Part shown: piece by piece, positions 9,963-41,427 of the stretch
How the letters are laid out: each line of letters starts with the position of its first letter
How positions within the stretch are numbered: position 1 is the first letter of the stretch
DNA from: Octopus sinensis
Lineage: Eukaryota
DNA: 64,000 nucleotides
Assembly: GCF_006345805.1 (NCBI RefSeq)
Contig: NC_043004.1
Location: 7,812,001-7,876,000, forward strand
Reading direction: 5' to 3'
Made by a program: the position numbers and the translations under genes
The notes under the pieces: generated by a model
The model's input: the letters and a program-made list of their open reading frames with translations, nothing else
Told to the model about the DNA's origin: nothing
Database searches by the model: none

Positions 9963-10019
9963 TTATGCATCTGCAATTGTAACTTCAACTTCAACACCAG
10001 GTTCAATGCTGATAGATGT
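9963..10019 (-). CDS. RPS20: RPS20 coding exon 4 (TSISIEPGVEVEVTIADA*)
   Basis: ttcag acceptor, conserved RPS20 C-terminus, TAA stop; AATAAA follows on the minus strand (9941-9946). Confidence 0.98.
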   Translation of the reverse strand, partial: TSISIEPGVEVEVTIADA

Positions 10020-10873
10020 CTGAAAGATCTTGTTAAGGAAAACCATTATACACAGAAAAGAACAGCAAAAACTCTCTTGATGACAGTAAACCTAGGCTCA
10101 CTTTATCTAATATGTCCCTGAAAGGACACCAGGGTAGCTTGGAGGAAGATTTCACAACTAGTAAGCCAAGCGGGCACATAAAAGGCTCCTTTGCACCAGT
10201 AATTAGCCTAATGTAGCTGCCATCACAGCCAATTTTTGAAGTTGACATTAGAAATAAGATCAAAAAACACTCTTGCAAATTGCACAAACTATTCTAATGA
10301 AATAAATCAATATTAATTAACCGACCAAAACCTTTGTGAGTGGATTTGGTAGACCTGACAAAACAAGTACCTGCAATTAACAAAAAAATTAAGTGCAATG
10401 GTCAATCATTCAACTAAAAACTTCAAAGCAGCATCCCAGCCTAATGAGTGAAACAATGTCACAAAATGATTCTGAGAGATGTGAAAGCTAAAAGCAATTC
10501 TATCAAGCTTTTTCATGAGCAAAAGTGACAGGCAGACTGGGATTGAAGCATTCTCACATACAAGGAGAATTAAAATTGTCAGTAACTGAGAGACAGACGT
10601 GTATAGTATTGTACGAGAAAGGAATAGACACACCTAGAGATCACAATATATTACCAAAGCACAAAGATGGCCAGTGTGAAGCTTACCAAAACTGTCTAAT
10701 TTCACAACATGGCTCTATGCTTGGTAAAACATCACTACAAGGGATGGAGGGAGAGAGAAAGAAAAATTGATAACTTATTTACTATTTACATACATCAAGG
10801 CCAATACAATGTACTAAAATCAATGACTCAATATGTCAGAAACAATAAAATTGTGCTGCCATCAACTAAAGTA

Positions 10874-10976
10874 AGTTGTAAAAACAACCACTGTTTAGTG
10901 ATAGCAAGTTTATATTTGCACCGTATACCACTAAATACTAATTATTAGTACACAGCCGGCTTAGTTAGTGCAGTGA
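10874..10976 (-). ncRNA. Candidate box H/ACA snoRNA, copy A (RPS20 intron 3)
   Basis: 98/101 identity to 12610-12710; 5' hairpin TGCAC/GTGCA with internal pocket; H box ATATAA; ACA 3 nt from the predicted 3' end; sense to the host gene. Confidence 0.65.
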
Positions 10977-11105
10977 TGATTATTGAGTACTTTCTATTTA
11001 AACATTTGCTCCTCATCCCCTTTACCTTGTATGAATAGGAATTTGACGTTCACACCACAACCCAATGTAAATCACAGACACCCAACAATAACTGGCATTC
11101 TTTTG

Positions 11106-11457
11106 TTTTGAATCGAAAAATCATAACATAGAACTTGGTAATTTCCGTGAACACGTGTTATCTTGTTAACTGTTAGTTGACATATTGAAATGGAAAGAGA
11201 AAGCTAATGGGTGCCTGTTTCTGCGTGTGTGCATGCACGTCTATTTCTGTGTTTGAGCGCGCTCTTTTCTTCAAGTTTAAAACACAACATTATCAGTGTA
11301 ATTTCGTTATATCTACACTTCACAACACAGAGGGACAAACACGCATGCACAACCCATTAGCTTTCGCTTTCCATTTCGATACATCAACTGACACATAACA
11401 AGGCAACATGTGCTCATGGAAATTACTGAGTTTTGTTATGATTTTTCAAGTCAAAAC
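11106..11457. mobile_element. Foldback MITE with ~105-bp imperfect terminal inverted repeats (RPS20 intron 3)
   Basis: 11106-11212 pairs with 11352-11457; interior related to the foldback at 16302-16580. Confidence 0.75.
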
Positions 11458-11532
11458 GGAAGAATTCCCAATAATTTAAACCCTTTCACTCCACCAAACA
11501 CTGTTTATAAAACAAAAATACAAAAAGGATAC

Positions 11533-11732
11533 AATCTGTTTTACTATCTCTGATGGACTGTGTAGATCAATAATTCTTTTGTGAATTCTCATCTGGTACC
11601 TGTCCCATGTTTTGGATCCTTCTCCACAAGGGGTCTTTCTTGTAGTGATACGGAGAATCTTAGTAGGCATACGAACAGGACCCTTAACTTTTAGTTGTTT
11701 CTCTTTGGCTCCTCTGATCAGATCAGCACACA
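11533..11732 (-). CDS. RPS20: RPS20 coding exon 3 ([25 protein letters not shown]...[10 protein letters not shown])
   Basis: cttag acceptor, 200 nt, phase consistent with exon 2; near-identical to known RPS20; ends at a GTATCCTTT donor. Confidence 0.98.
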
Positions 11733-11979
11733 CTAAGTTGAAAGAAAAGGTATTTAAAAACATTAACCACCAGGCAACATATTTGATCCAGCAAATCAGA
11801 ATTATGCATATACATCCTCTTTACAGATGACAAAATGTCAATAAACAATTAAACACAAATTCCATCAAAAAACAGAAATCACCTTCAGGCCGTGCTCACT
11901 TTGCATTGTCGTACAATATATTTCTGCTAATATATTCCAATAGGCACCCCCCCCAATCTTAATTTACAGAAATACTCAC

Positions 11980-12082
11980 CCTTTTCTAAGCTTTTTACAT
12001 TCCTACTCGTCAAGGTGATGCGGATTCTGTGAACTGGAACATCTTCAACTGGAGCCTTACCAGTGTCTTTAGCGCAATGAGC
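11980..12082 (-). CDS. RPS20: RPS20 coding exon 2 ([34 protein letters not shown]+G)
   Basis: ttcag acceptor, gtgagt donor, 103 nt; translation matches the uS10 N-terminus ([17 protein letters not shown]). Confidence 0.97.
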
Positions 12083-12607
12083 CTGAATTGAAAAATTTCA
12101 ATCAATTGAATAGAGTGAGAGAACAAAAGCACTAACAATTTGGATGGTGAATTAAAAGGGTTTCAATAAGTAACAGTTTTAGTTCAGCTCAAGTCCAGTG
12201 TTTATTGAACAAAGATACTCCACACACAAACTCCATTCAATCCAAAGTATCAAAGACGGCATGGTGTGTGGATGAAGATCGATTTGACAATTTATAAGCA
12301 AGGGGCTTCATTGTCTCATCGCTGTACTAATGTGAAATGTAAACTGCCCACAAGAGCCAAAGTATGTGGGCAAACATGTAAATACAGACACACATCACTA
12401 ATCCATGAAGGTGATCAGCAGAGCAGACAGAATATTCATTCAGTGCAACAACCATGCGTTTGATATTTTAAAACTCCAATCGTCTACCGTAATTTTATCA
12501 AAACAAAAAAAAATTTCTAAACTAAAACTGTTGTACTTCATTTGAAACAGGGTCAGAAAATAAAAAGGTTAGATCCGACATCAATGTAATGCTGACAGCT
12601 AATTGCA

Positions 12608-12710
12608 AATTGTGAAAACAACCACTGTTTAGTGCCAGCAAGTTTATATTTGCACCGTATACCACTAAATACTAATTATTAGTACACAGCCGGCTTAGTT
12701 AGTGCAGTGA
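12608..12710 (-). ncRNA. Candidate box H/ACA snoRNA, copy B (RPS20 intron 1)
   Basis: Duplicate of copy A with unrelated flanks; H and ACA boxes conserved. Confidence 0.65.
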
Positions 12711-13460
12711 AAACAACAGGTTATGTAGGCAGATATGTACAATATAAACAATGAGGAAACCAAGCACATCATTTCCATATTTTCAGAAAATACAATATCT
12801 ATGTAAATCATTCGTATACTCCTAAATAAAATAAACCAGGTTGATATCACAAAATTATCCTCCAGTTTCTTGACCTACATCAATAATTATGAACAGGCAA
12901 GCACTCTCCCAATAGTTATCAGTTACGGAAATTGGTAACAACAAAGTCGGAGAGAACTCGCGCCAATTATTCTTCGTAGAATTTATAAGCACAAATTGTA
13001 ATCTCGCCACAATTCTAGAAATAAATCCTTGGATAAATCTGTAGGAAACATCAACCTAATCATGTCCTATGATGCCGGGAAATCTTTTAAAGAGTGACAT
13101 ATATATATATATATACTATTTAAGGGATACTGGAGCAGCTGTGAATCATAAAAAGCGATTGACCCTAATTAAATCAGAACCTATATAGACAAAATGCACC
13201 AAAGCTTCCCATAATACATAGCACATAATTAACCACATGTTGACAGAGCAAGCCAGATTGATTTGGCGATCTGGATCTCATCGATCTCGTGACCTAGATC
13301 CGATCAGGATTTACCAGAGTTACACAACAAACAAGAATAACTTCTAATATGGGCAATTATTGAAAAATTAGTAGATTATAATGAAGAGATAAATAATTAT
13401 ATTTCGACAATCGTAATGTTTAACGAATTGGTGGTAAGTGGTAAAATGTGACTGAGATGG

Positions 13461-13653
13461 GTACTACTTGAGAAGTGGTCCCGGTGCGCGCACTCGCTAG
13501 TCATGACTAGTCGATCCTTATTTACTTTGTGTAAAAAAATTATTTATTTTGTGTTTTATTTACTTTGTTAGGTAGTCGTAGGATCGACTAGTCATGACTA
13601 GCTAGCGCGGATGCGCGACTACGCGCACCGGGACCACTGAACTAAAGTAGTAC
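13461..13653. repeat. GC-rich inverted-repeat element (MITE-like) in RPS20 intron 1
   Basis: AGTGGTCCCGGTGCGCG...CTAGTCATGACTAGTCGATCCT pairs with AGGATCGACTAGTCATGACTAG...CGCGCACCGGGACCACT. Confidence 0.7.
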
Positions 13654-14064
13654 TCTGGGATGTTTCCTGTGTAACTCTTCTCCAACGGTATGACCCTTAA
13701 AGGTCCGAGAAACTAATTTCTCGGACCGAATGAAACGTGTACAAATAGTAACTCCCACCCCGACCACAACGAAATAAGTGATTGCTGTGGAGTCAACGTT
13801 GGGACATTTGCTAAAACAGATCATAAAGGTTAAGACGAGAATATGAAGAATGCGGAAAGCGATGAATTGAATCCATTTCAAAAGAGCCAACATCATAAAA
13901 ACCGATGAATTTAATAATAATTTCCTTTAAAGACCGCATGGAGATGAAACATGGCGCCCACATGCTGGAATTTAATTGAGGACTTTTCAAACAGAAATTA
14001 CTCATTAAATATAACAATTGTAAACAAAATGGAAAATATCAACATAAATTTAATTTCTACATAC

Positions 14065-14067
14065 CAT
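14065..14067 (-). CDS. RPS20: 40S ribosomal protein S20 (uS10), coding exon 1 (ATG only)
   Basis: Minus strand reads AAAATG|gtatgt; an ATG-only first coding exon is typical of this gene; joins exon 2 in phase 0; a pyrimidine-tract start lies ~100 nt upstream. Confidence 0.85.
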
Positions 14068-34751: not shown

Positions 34752-36000
34752 AATATATATACTGGGTGCAGTGGGTAAATTGTTGTCATATTTTTAATTT
34801 TGTGCATGTGCATCTTTTGTTTTTGATTTTGTTGACTACACAGTATAGTCGAATCAGTTGGACACCGTCTGTGAGAAAAACAGCACCATGATGCAATTCA
34901 CTCTGCCAGAAATTTGGTAACAACATGCTGTACTGCTTGGCATTTGCACTGGAAGCTCCAATATGAACATTCTAGTGCTTGGGTGTCAGCCTGAAGTCAG
35001 TGCTGAGGATTCAGAAAGAGTCGGATGAGTCTAATGTTGATTATGAAGGTACAGCAGCTTTGAAACTCACTCTAATTGTTCTGATAAGAAAAGAACTCTT
35101 GAATTTGTTGGTGAGATCCAGGCCATGATTGACTACAATCCCTCCAAGTCAATCAGGTCCATTGCCAGGGACATAGGAGTGTCTGAGTTTCTTATCAGGC
35201 AGGTAATGCATGAAGACATTTGATGGTCTTCATACAAGATGAAAAAGGGTCAATTTTTATCCCAAGCCATCAAAGACAAGAGGAAAGACTGCGGTATGAA
35301 GCTTTTGAACAAACTCAAGCATCCTCTCCAACCAAACATGCTTTGGTTTTTCTCAGATGAGAAAAATTTTTGCCAGGATCAGATGGCGAACGCACAGAAC
35401 AACCTTTGGTTTGCCGTGTCCCCAAAACATGTACCAAGTGTGATAAAAATCAAACATCCAGTCAACATCATGGTGTTTAGAGTGATCACTAGTGATGGCA
35501 ACATTAAGATTCCATTCATTTTCCCACATGGCTACAGACTCAACTCAGAGGCCTACATCAAGTGCCTAGAGGAGGTAGTGCTGTCCTGGGTGAAGAGGGT
35601 GGCTGCTGAAAGACCCTATGTCTGGCAACAGGACTCTGCACCAATGCCATACAAGCAGGAGAACCCAGTCATGGCTGTCAGACAATTTTTGCAATCACAT
35701 CACCCTAACGTCTGGCCACGTAACTCCCTTGATTATTATGTGTGGGGCACAGTTGAGAAAGAGACCAACAAAACTCTTTGTAACACCAAAGATGAACTGA
35801 AGGTAAGGATTATAACAGCATTCACCAACTTAATCAAGGAGATCGTCCAGAAGAGTTGCAGGAGATTCTGAAGTCGTCTGAAGGCTGTGGTTGAAGCCAA
35901 TGGTGATTTTATTGAATAAATTTAAACATTAGTTTTTCAAATTATTTCTACGTAAGTTTGGTAAATATATCTGTTAAAATGAGATGTCATTGTTATTTCC
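34752..36000 (+). mobile_element. IS630/Tc1/mariner element, probably maT (DD37D) family, degenerate
   Basis: 210-aa ORF 35239-35871 with WFFSDEKNF, VWQQDSAP and WP..LDYYVWG motifs; upstream stops; TA-CTGGGTG start. Confidence 0.85.
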
Positions 36001-39879: not shown

Positions 39880-41427
39880 GGCTATTAGAAAAAAGAGACA
39901 GGCTTGGAAGGACTGGAAGAATGGTGGTAGCAGGGAATCGTATCAGACTGCCAAAAGAGAAGCTAGGAGACAGGTTTGTTTAGCCAGAGCGGAAGCAGAT
40001 AAGAAAAAAAATTGCCAATGTTCTGCGCCGTGAGGACCAAAGACTTGAGGTATTTCATGTTGCAAGACAGTGTATGAGAGAGAATCGTGATGTGGTAGGA
40101 GAGAAATGTGTCCACATGGATGATGGTTCACTTGCACTAAATGAGGCTGCAAGGAGAGAGGTTTGGAGATGCCACTATGAAAGGCTGCTGAACAAAGAAA
40201 ATGAATGGGAGAAAGAGAGTCTGACGATTGTCGTCCCAACAGAGGGACCAGCTATCCGAGTTGACTGTACCTTGGTAGTTAAAGCAATTAAGAGTATGAA
40301 GACAGGGAAAGCCCCCGACCCATCAGAAATTACTTCAGAGATGCTCAAAATATCTGGCAGTGTCGGCATTAGCCTGTATAGTTAACCAGGTGATACACGA
40401 AGGAGTCATACCCAATGATTGGTATAGCAGCACTATAGTCAACTGCTACAAAGGTAAAGGTGACACTTTAAATACAAATAATTACAGAGGTATCAAGCTC
40501 TTGGATCAGGTAATGAAGGTCACGGAGAGGGTCATAGCCCAACTAATTAGGGAAAGAGTCAGTTTGGATGAGATGCAGTTTGGTTTCGTGCCAGGGAAAA
40601 GCATCACTGATGCTATATTTCTGGTTAGACAGCTGCAGGAGAAATACCTAGCCAAAGTTAAGCCCCTGTACCTAGCTTTGGTTGACATGGAGAAAGCCTT
40701 TGGCAGGGTCCCCCGATCTCTTATCTGGTGGTCAATGAGGAAACTAGGGATAGATGAATGGTTAGTGAGAGCCGTGCAAGCCATGTACAGGGACACTGTC
40801 AGTAAGGTGAGGGTTGGCAACGAGTACAGTGAAGAATTCCGGGTAGAGGTAGGAGTCCACCAAGGTTCAGTCCTCAGCCCCCTCCTATTTATCATAGTCC
40901 TCCAGGCAATAATGGAGGAATTCAAGACAGGATGTCCCTGGGAGCTCCTCTATGCTGATGACCTTGCTCTAATTGCTGAGTCACTAACAGAACTAGAGGA
41001 GACGTTTCAAGTGTGGAAACAAGGATTAGAATCGAAGGGCCTTAAAGTCAACCTAGCTAAAACCAAAGTCCTAATAAGTAGGAAGGCATGCAAACCACAA
41101 ATCCCTTCAGGTAGATGGCCTTGTTCGATCTGTAGAAAAGGTGTAGGTAGAAACTATATAAGATGTACCCAGTGTAAGCTATGGACACATAAGAGGTGCA
41201 ACAATATCAAAGGAAGGCTAACTGGGAGGATAGTTTTTGTATGTGGCAGAAGCTCGGGCACTCTAAATAACACTGAAAATATCCAGAGAACAACTTCCAC
41301 CACATTCCAGGGAGAAAAACTTGAAGTAGTTAATAGCTTCCGTTACCTAGGTGACCAAGTCAGTAGTGGGGGAGGGTTCACTGAAAGTGTAGCTACTAGA
41401 ATAAGAATAGCCTGGGCTAAGTTTTAA
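39880..41427 (+). mobile_element. RTE LINE ORF fragment with an open 355-codon RT region
   Basis: ORFs 40074-40385 and 40360-41427: QFGF, GVHQGSVLSP, YADD, Cys/His-rich WPCSICRKG...CTQCKLWTHKRC, F.YLG; truncated at both ends. Confidence 0.95.

Follow-up and report, generated by a model that had tools for sequence, protein, structure and literature searches.

What do two near-identical stretches in different introns of one octopus gene encode? The DNA analysed here (the window) spans 64,000 nucleotides (nt) of the Octopus sinensis genome (NCBI RefSeq assembly GCF_006345805.1, contig NC_043004.1, positions 7,812,001 to 7,876,000), and the gene is that of ribosomal protein S20 (RPS20, uS10), which is read from the minus strand. 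A sequence-only reading of the window had taken the pair for two intronic copies of an unannotated H/ACA-like RNA of 101 nt, possibly a compact variant, with U649/U651 of 18S ribosomal RNA (rRNA) as a plausible target. We find that the class, the cephalopod origin and the host gene were named correctly and that the predicted RNA is longer, has an ordinary shape and likely has a different target. As judged from their sequence, the two copies, which we call i3 and i1 after the introns that hold them, are a previously unannotated, conserved and ordinary pair of box H/ACA small nucleolar RNAs (snoRNAs). Each is very probably a canonical two-hairpin snoRNA of about 129 nt, produced from an RPS20 intron, the 5' pocket of which would guide modification at the equivalent of human 18S U1232.

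Two copies of one RNA in RPS20 introns

A repeat search of the window returned one direct-repeat family, composed of positions 10873-10976 and 12607-12710 (104 nt, 96% identity, 4 differences). In an ungapped comparison, the 101 nt at 10876-10976 and 12610-12710 differ by three mismatches, AU to GG and U to C, exactly as had been read from the letters. The fourth mismatch of the 104-nt block lies directly beyond the 'ACA' that had been taken for the end of the RNA. A third copy was found nowhere in the 64 kb, either by a 40-nt probe that tolerated up to 3 mismatches (2 sites versus 0 expected) or by two covariance models, R1 and R2, the latter run with its filters off. Both models returned the same two matches, copy i3 scoring 136 bits and copy i1 135 bits with R1, and copy i3 82 bits with R2.

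Copy i3 resides in RPS20 intron 3 (10020-11532) and copy i1 in intron 1 (12083-14064), both read in the same direction as the gene. Minus-strand open frames encode ribosomal protein S20/uS10, and the spliced product of 120 amino acids is identical to RS20 of Octopus vulgaris and O. sinensis. The flanks of the two copies had been described as unrelated. This is correct for the 5' flanks, but on the 3' side the approximately 25 nt that follow the near-identical block are part of the RNA. Their sequence has diverged between the copies and still forms the 3' arm of the 3' hairpin. A scan of the window against Rfam at gathering thresholds gave no match.

Architecture of the full-length RNA

The clue to the full length came from cuttlefish homologues (described below), which have a 5-bp basal stem and an ACA far past the part that can be aligned with the Octopus block. 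On re-reading, the Octopus copies have the same. The predicted RNA of copy i3 spans about 129 nt (10849-10977, minus strand; both ends are predicted). Its 5' hairpin (10917-10972) consists of a lower stem UGCACU/GGUGCA, a pocket, an upper stem and a UAA loop, and is followed by the H box AUAUAA, an ANANNA motif (10910-10915), and by a 3' hairpin of 52 nt (10856-10907) that lacks an open pocket, nearly all of its bases being paired. The hairpin is separated by 1 nt from the true ACA box (10852-10854), and the 3' end is predicted 3 nt beyond that box, at about 10849. Copy i1 spans about 130 nt (12582-12711, minus strand) and has a 5' hairpin identical to that of i3 (12651-12706), the H box AUAUAA (12644-12649), a 3' hairpin (12590-12640) and the true ACA box 2 nt past it (12585-12587). 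The 3' ends read C-ACA-AUU in i3 and UU-ACA-UUG in i1. The ACA follows the 3' hairpin by 1-2 nt in all copies, the mature 3' end being predicted rather than mapped.

Computed folds have the hairpin-hinge-hairpin-tail form on the sense strand. The values are -39.0 kcal/mol (z = -4.35) for copy i3 and -35.9 kcal/mol (z = -2.58) for copy i1, with z = -0.84 and z = +0.43, respectively, for the opposite strands. Two hairpins joined by a single-stranded hinge are present in the minimum-energy folds of both Octopus and both cuttlefish copies, and the antisense sequences have no such fold. Because the fold is confined to the sense strand, an ANANNA motif lies in the hinge and an ACA lies 1-2 nt past the 3' hairpin, we assign the RNA to the H/ACA class with high confidence. 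At the level of sequence, every hallmark of a box H/ACA snoRNA is present in the predicted molecule.

The 3' hairpin also bears on how the two copies are related. In both, the conserved 5' arm (CUUGCU..CACUAA) still finds its pairing partner in the diverged 3' stretch. The only differences in the 5' arm, AU in i3 and GG in i1, are offset in the 3' arm, so that A-U becomes G-C and U-A becomes G.U. Since the first 104 nt are near-identical and the 3' arm has diverged yet compensates, the sequences suggest that the 104-nt part may have been kept alike by a recent (partial) duplication or (partial) gene conversion. A weak Rfam match to the plant H/ACA family snoR137 (12585-12708, minus strand, 19.3 bits, E 7.9) covers the whole of full-length i1 and ends exactly at the ACA assigned here as the true one.

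The motifs named by the sequence-only reading, TAACTAAG, TATACG, ATATAA and an ACA, are all found on the minus strand, and ATATAA is indeed the H box and sits in the hinge. The length, the 3' hairpin and the 3' end drawn from the 101-nt block do not hold. Its 'terminal' ACA (10876-10879) falls near the top of the 3' hairpin, the real ACA boxes lie beyond the block, and the predicted length is about 129 nt. The short 3' hairpin is an artefact of stopping at the block end; the hairpin is a normal one of 52 nt, and the cuttlefish RNAs have the same arrangement. The limits of a block that is near-identical in two paralogues are not necessarily those of the RNA, and assuming that they were gave rise to the false 'compact variant'.

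The 5' pocket and its 18S rRNA target

The pocket proposed earlier, TAACTAAG and TATACG, was drawn too small, and no conserved rRNA site in the 120 contigs described below pairs with it canonically, with or without one mismatch. When the weak CCGG/UGG closing pairs of the minimum-energy fold are opened, the upper stem begins with G.U/C-G and a larger pocket results. Its 5' strand is AACUAAGCCG (10957-10966 in i3, 12691-12700 in i1) and its 3' strand is GGUAUAC (10923-10929 in i3, 12657-12663 in i1), the latter beginning 14 nt before the H box AUAUAA.

Possible targets were sought in a panel of 120 eukaryotic ribosomal DNA (rDNA) contigs, which were fetched by a scan with the 3' end of 18S. The sole conserved canonical match among them, present in every contig carrying the site, is AGGAGUGGAGCC[UG]CGGCUUAAUUUG. 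The Octopus RNA pairs there with 3+7 base pairs (bp), the cuttlefish intron-2 copy with 5+10 bp and the cuttlefish intron-3 copy with 3+10 bp. The candidate target is thus 18S GAGCC[UG]CGGCUUAAUU, in which the uridine has the context GAGCC-U-GCGGCUUAAUU. We take this uridine to be the equivalent of human U1232 by counting back from the hypermodified m1acp3-Psi at human position 1248, 16 nt 5' of which it lies. In Octopus, GGU of the 3' strand pairs with the 18S GCC that directly precedes the target U. Beyond the unpaired UG, CGGCUUA forms 7 bp with the 5' strand AACUAAGCCG, and an A.C mismatch and 2 further bp follow. The cuttlefish 5' strand, AAUUAAGCCG, pairs with 18S at 10/10 positions. When the guide was shuffled, a conserved match of at least 10 bp anywhere was obtained in 11/400 trials. 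These findings make the human-U1232 equivalent the likely target of the Octopus RNA, and we infer that the RNA would direct the isomerisation of this uridine to pseudouridine.

Two other sites had been put forward earlier, and neither passes a bipartite scan of the 120 rDNA contigs in five pocket registers with 0 or 1 mismatch. When the pairing is drawn by hand, each site has a partner in one strand only. For U649/U651 this is the 3' strand, which pairs with CGUAUA; AAAGUUG, next to the target U, has no in-register partner in the 5' strand. The alternative 11-nt match to CUUAGUUGGUG exists because 18S CGGCUUAAUU and UUCUUAGUU are similar. Forming its 11 bp would use up the lower stem, with 1 bp remaining across the pocket.

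We also considered the 3' hairpin as a second guide. A guide for 18S U1692, the long-listed target of SNORA70, was looked for at CCCUU[UG]UACACACC in all registers, and the best pairing was 5 bp for the Octopus and 8 bp for the cuttlefish 3' hairpin. The best conserved match of the Octopus 3' hairpin, to GGUUAA[UU]CCG, is a wobble-rich 7+3 bp, which we take to be a chance occurrence. The Octopus 3' hairpin probably serves only the assembly and stability of the ribonucleoprotein.

In cuttlefish, the 3' hairpins of both paralogues (349-401 and 924-987 of contig L128 and their equivalents in contig L132) can pair with 7+6 bp at 18S CGUUCUUAGU[UG]GUGGAG, and the differences between the paralogues (G/A and U/C) preserve this pairing by wobble. 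The cuttlefish 3' hairpins may have a second guide function that is without counterpart in the Octopus copies.

Conservation in cuttlefish

When the open frame that surrounds RPS20 exon 3 in the Octopus genome was used as a protein query, exon-plus-intron fragments from raw assemblies were returned. The contigs behind two of these fragments, L128-L131 and L132, each contain two homologues of the Octopus RNA, flanking RPS20 exon 3 (R1 scores of 42-47 bits, E of about 1e-7). Intron 2 contains one of them, 53 nt upstream of exon 3, and intron 3 the other. Contigs L128, L129 and L131 share one sequence (100% identity), from which L130 departs slightly (99.6%). With an identity of 87.6%, L132 stems from a second cuttlefish-like species. 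The run from which L131 derives, ERR12945500, is described as Acanthosepion esculentum short reads (bioRxiv 10.1101/2025.04.22.649952).

Between Octopus and cuttlefish, only exon 3 (85% identity) and the 5' domain of the snoRNA (74-82%) can be aligned, and the rest of the introns cannot. The two lineages diverged a few hundred million years ago. Conserved features of the 5' domain are the lower stem, the two guide strands and the position of the H box, and the upper stem and loop vary. The guide strands do show exceptions: the 5' strand has a single C/U difference, and the 3' strand of the cuttlefish intron-2 copy carries two changes. At the position of the Octopus H box AUAUAA the cuttlefish RNAs have AUAUCA, and they share the full two-hairpin architecture of the Octopus RNA. 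Over 17 base pairs compared in octopus and cuttlefish, 95% of the pair cells are paired, versus 27-47% when the partners are slid. The changes in the 5' hairpin comprise one compensatory change (C-G to U-A) and five one-sided changes compatible with pairing. The evidence from covariation is modest, and its pattern fits an H/ACA guide.

Among octopuses, the window matches O. sinensis CM016866.1 at 100% identity and O. vulgaris at 98.5%. Both RNAs of O. vulgaris are identical to those of O. sinensis, which is little informative at an overall intron identity of 98.5%. Two further contigs with RPS20-like exons gave no homologue: L127 by the covariance models, and L133 (804 nt) by a guide-pattern scan and reading.

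Relation to known snoRNAs

Among Rfam families, both Octopus copies match SNORA70 (RF00156) best, with 20.4 and 20.3 bits and an E-value of about 1.2, the match covering the 5' hairpin and the H box. SNORA70 is also the best Rfam match of the intron-3 copy in both cuttlefish contigs scanned (16.8 and 16.7 bits). The consensus 5' strand of SNORA70 is AAUUAAGCCG. A catalogue of human snoRNAs credits the SNORA70 family, through its 5' stem, with the pseudouridine at position 1232 of 18S and lists this interaction as conserved in 'Vertebrates' (PMC4914119, Table 2). The host of human SNORA70 is RPL10 (PMC12152556). The Octopus RNA shares with SNORA70 the two-hairpin H/ACA form and an intronic location in a ribosomal-protein gene, and it combines a 5' strand ..AA(U/C)UAAGCCG with a 3' strand starting from GGU that are complementary to the same 18S GCC[UG]CGGCUUAAUU. 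Unlike in SNORA70, the 3' hairpin carries no U1692 guide. It does not align with the family, 50 model positions being deleted. The host, too, is RPS20 instead of RPL10, although host switches are common and this is weak evidence either way.

The Octopus RNA is predicted to work like the 5' half of SNORA70. Shared ancestry and convergence cannot be told apart here because the parts that are similar are those that the target constrains. Common ancestry with the vertebrate SNORA70, rather than convergence on the same target, is a tentative proposal that in our view falls somewhat short of probable.

Compared with metazoan intronic H/ACA RNAs in general, the Octopus RNA is entirely typical. It has a length of about 130 nt, the hairpin-hinge-hairpin-tail form, the ANANNA and ACA boxes and a pocket 14 nt before the H box, and it lies in the sense orientation in introns, with paralogues in neighbouring introns of one host gene. 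There is no difference of substance, as a single evident guide pocket, which is what the Octopus RNA has, is common among H/ACA RNAs. SNORD54 (U54), which the sequence-only reading named as the snoRNA hosted by vertebrate RPS20, belongs to the C/D class, unlike the Octopus H/ACA RNA.

By analogy with metazoan intronic H/ACA RNAs, the RNA would be transcribed inside the RPS20 precursor messenger RNA (mRNA), bound by dyskerin/Cbf5, Nop10, Nhp2 and Gar1, and released as the spliced intron is debranched and trimmed by exonucleases, which would leave the 3' end 3 nt after the ACA. The pocket of the 5' hairpin would then pair with pre-18S rRNA such that the U1232 equivalent is placed, unpaired, at the top of the pocket and isomerised. 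Two copies would provide a double dose of the guide.

Weighing of alternative explanations

Several observations weigh against the interpretation of the RNA as a conserved guide for the U1232 equivalent. The scores with SNORA70 (17-20 bits) are about half the gathering score of 40 bits or less and thus below the threshold for membership in the family. The covariation was obtained from six distinct sequences of two lineages and includes one two-sided pair in the 5' hairpin, a count that 296/500 shuffles equal. Searches of RPS20 in four other molluscs (Babylonia, Patella, Mya and Physella) with R1, with R2 with filters off, with the guide pattern and with Rfam gave no homologue. The pairing of the Octopus RNA was computed on a stretch of 18S that is common to 49/49 other eukaryotic contigs carrying it and is not Octopus's own. 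In both Octopus copies (10964 in i3, 12698 in i1) and in O. vulgaris the guide has a C at a position where cuttlefish and SNORA70 have a U, and this C faces an 18S A that is invariant in the 49/49 contigs, which results in the A.C mismatch. Contiguous pairing consequently amounts to just 3+7 bp, a score that shuffled guides sometimes match at non-conserved sites. The Octopus 18S may have a matching change opposite the guide C.

The mismatch and the short contiguous pairing would also be expected if the RNA were a real H/ACA snoRNA with a target in Octopus other than the U1232 equivalent, either an orphan or a guide retargeted to a lineage-specific site in rRNA, small nuclear RNA or mRNA that matches AACUAAGCCG perfectly (..CGGCUUAGUU). 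Nevertheless, the cuttlefish homologues pair with 13-15 bp at exactly the U1232 site, which is the only conserved canonical match and at the same time the site of the best-matching Rfam family, and 3+7 bp is still a usual size for bipartite pairing. We therefore regard a different target as unlikely.

The possibility that the sequences are no snoRNA at all is far smaller. Repeats and transposon reading frames abound in the window, and a fragment of a dispersed repeat or transposon could have landed in two introns by chance and resemble an H/ACA RNA in looks only. Against this, the 64 kb contain just two copies, both in the sense orientation and in one host gene, and homologues are present in the same gene of cuttlefish while the surrounding introns cannot be aligned. 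Conservation tracks the functional elements of a snoRNA, and a metagenome scan with the guide and lower-stem pattern returned 0 matches. We consider this explanation barely credible. Scarcely more probable is that the stable, conserved hairpins, lying as they do in introns of a ribosomal-protein gene, act in cis on RPS20 splicing or autoregulation, or give rise to small RNAs, and are not trans-acting guides. The lineages differ in the introns involved, octopus having the RNA in introns 1 and 3 and cuttlefish in introns 2 and 3, and the distance to the splice site ranges from 53 nt to 829 nt. A cis role also does not predict H/ACA boxes at canonical positions or a conserved single-stranded pocket complementary to 18S. 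A canonical H/ACA snoRNA directed at the U1232 equivalent thus remains the preferred explanation.

Host gene and other features of the locus

The coding range of RPS20 (9963-14067, minus strand) was read from the sequence, and a gene call maps to the same range. Exon 1 ends with the ATG (14065-14067) and is followed by exon 2 (11980-12082), exon 3 (11533-11732) and exon 4, the last coding exon, the coding part of which occupies 9963-10019. A TM9SF/EMP70 gene, which runs through the window from about 14600 on the plus strand, is arranged head-to-head with RPS20 at a distance of about 500 bp. The same arrangement is found in the limpet Patella caerulea (1-2430 of the Patella contig). TM9SF and RPS20 are hence an old molluscan gene pair and probably share a bidirectional promoter. 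A search toward other cephalopods with a TM9SF query of 74 amino acids returned only short fragments.

Both RPS20 introns that hold a copy of the RNA contain inverted repeats. Intron 3 has a long imperfect one at 11094-11468, with 81-nt arms that are 83% complementary and 35-nt outer arms, resembling a miniature inverted-repeat transposable element (MITE) or foldback element. In intron 1, at 13489-13609, two 30-nt arms that are 93% complementary lie 61 nt apart, and each contains the palindrome CTAGTCATGACTAG. The large introns of TM9SF contain an open frame of 375 amino acids with a reverse-transcriptase-like YADD motif (40300-41424, plus strand) and a transposase-like open frame of 215 amino acids (35224-35868, plus strand). 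Many microsatellite-derived open frames are also present in the window.

At the edge of contigs L128 and L132 (positions 1-30 of each), in cuttlefish RPS20 intron 2, lies the 3' end of a C/D snoRNA resembling U14/SNORD14, CCUUCCUUGGAUGUCUGA, upstream of the H/ACA copy (23.5 bits, the match being cut by the contig end). Cuttlefish RPS20 intron 2 thus seems to host two snoRNAs. The sequence CCUUCCUUGGAUGUCUGA does not occur in the Octopus window with up to 3 mismatches, and no C/D family was significant in an Rfam E-value scan of the Octopus RPS20 introns. A UGAUGG...CUGA pair noticed by eye in Octopus intron 2 was dismissed as a C/D RNA, having neither a terminal stem nor support from Rfam.

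Implications

A literature search on snoRNAs, Octopus and pseudouridylation returned general reviews of RNA modification and no paper on Octopus snoRNAs. The present findings add an unannotated snoRNA gene pair to cephalopod genomes and make a testable prediction, namely a pseudouridine in cephalopod 18S rRNA at the equivalent of human U1232. They also suggest a greater age for the modification and its guide than the human snoRNA catalogue implies with the label 'Vertebrates'. More speculatively, and in our opinion doubtfully, the 18S Psi1232 guide could be an old bilaterian module that has survived in coleoid cephalopods in another host gene and with a different or guide-less 3' hairpin. If so, H/ACA RNAs would evolve hairpin by hairpin, and the U-to-C change in the Octopus guide would either lower modification at this position near the P site or track a change in the Octopus 18S rRNA.

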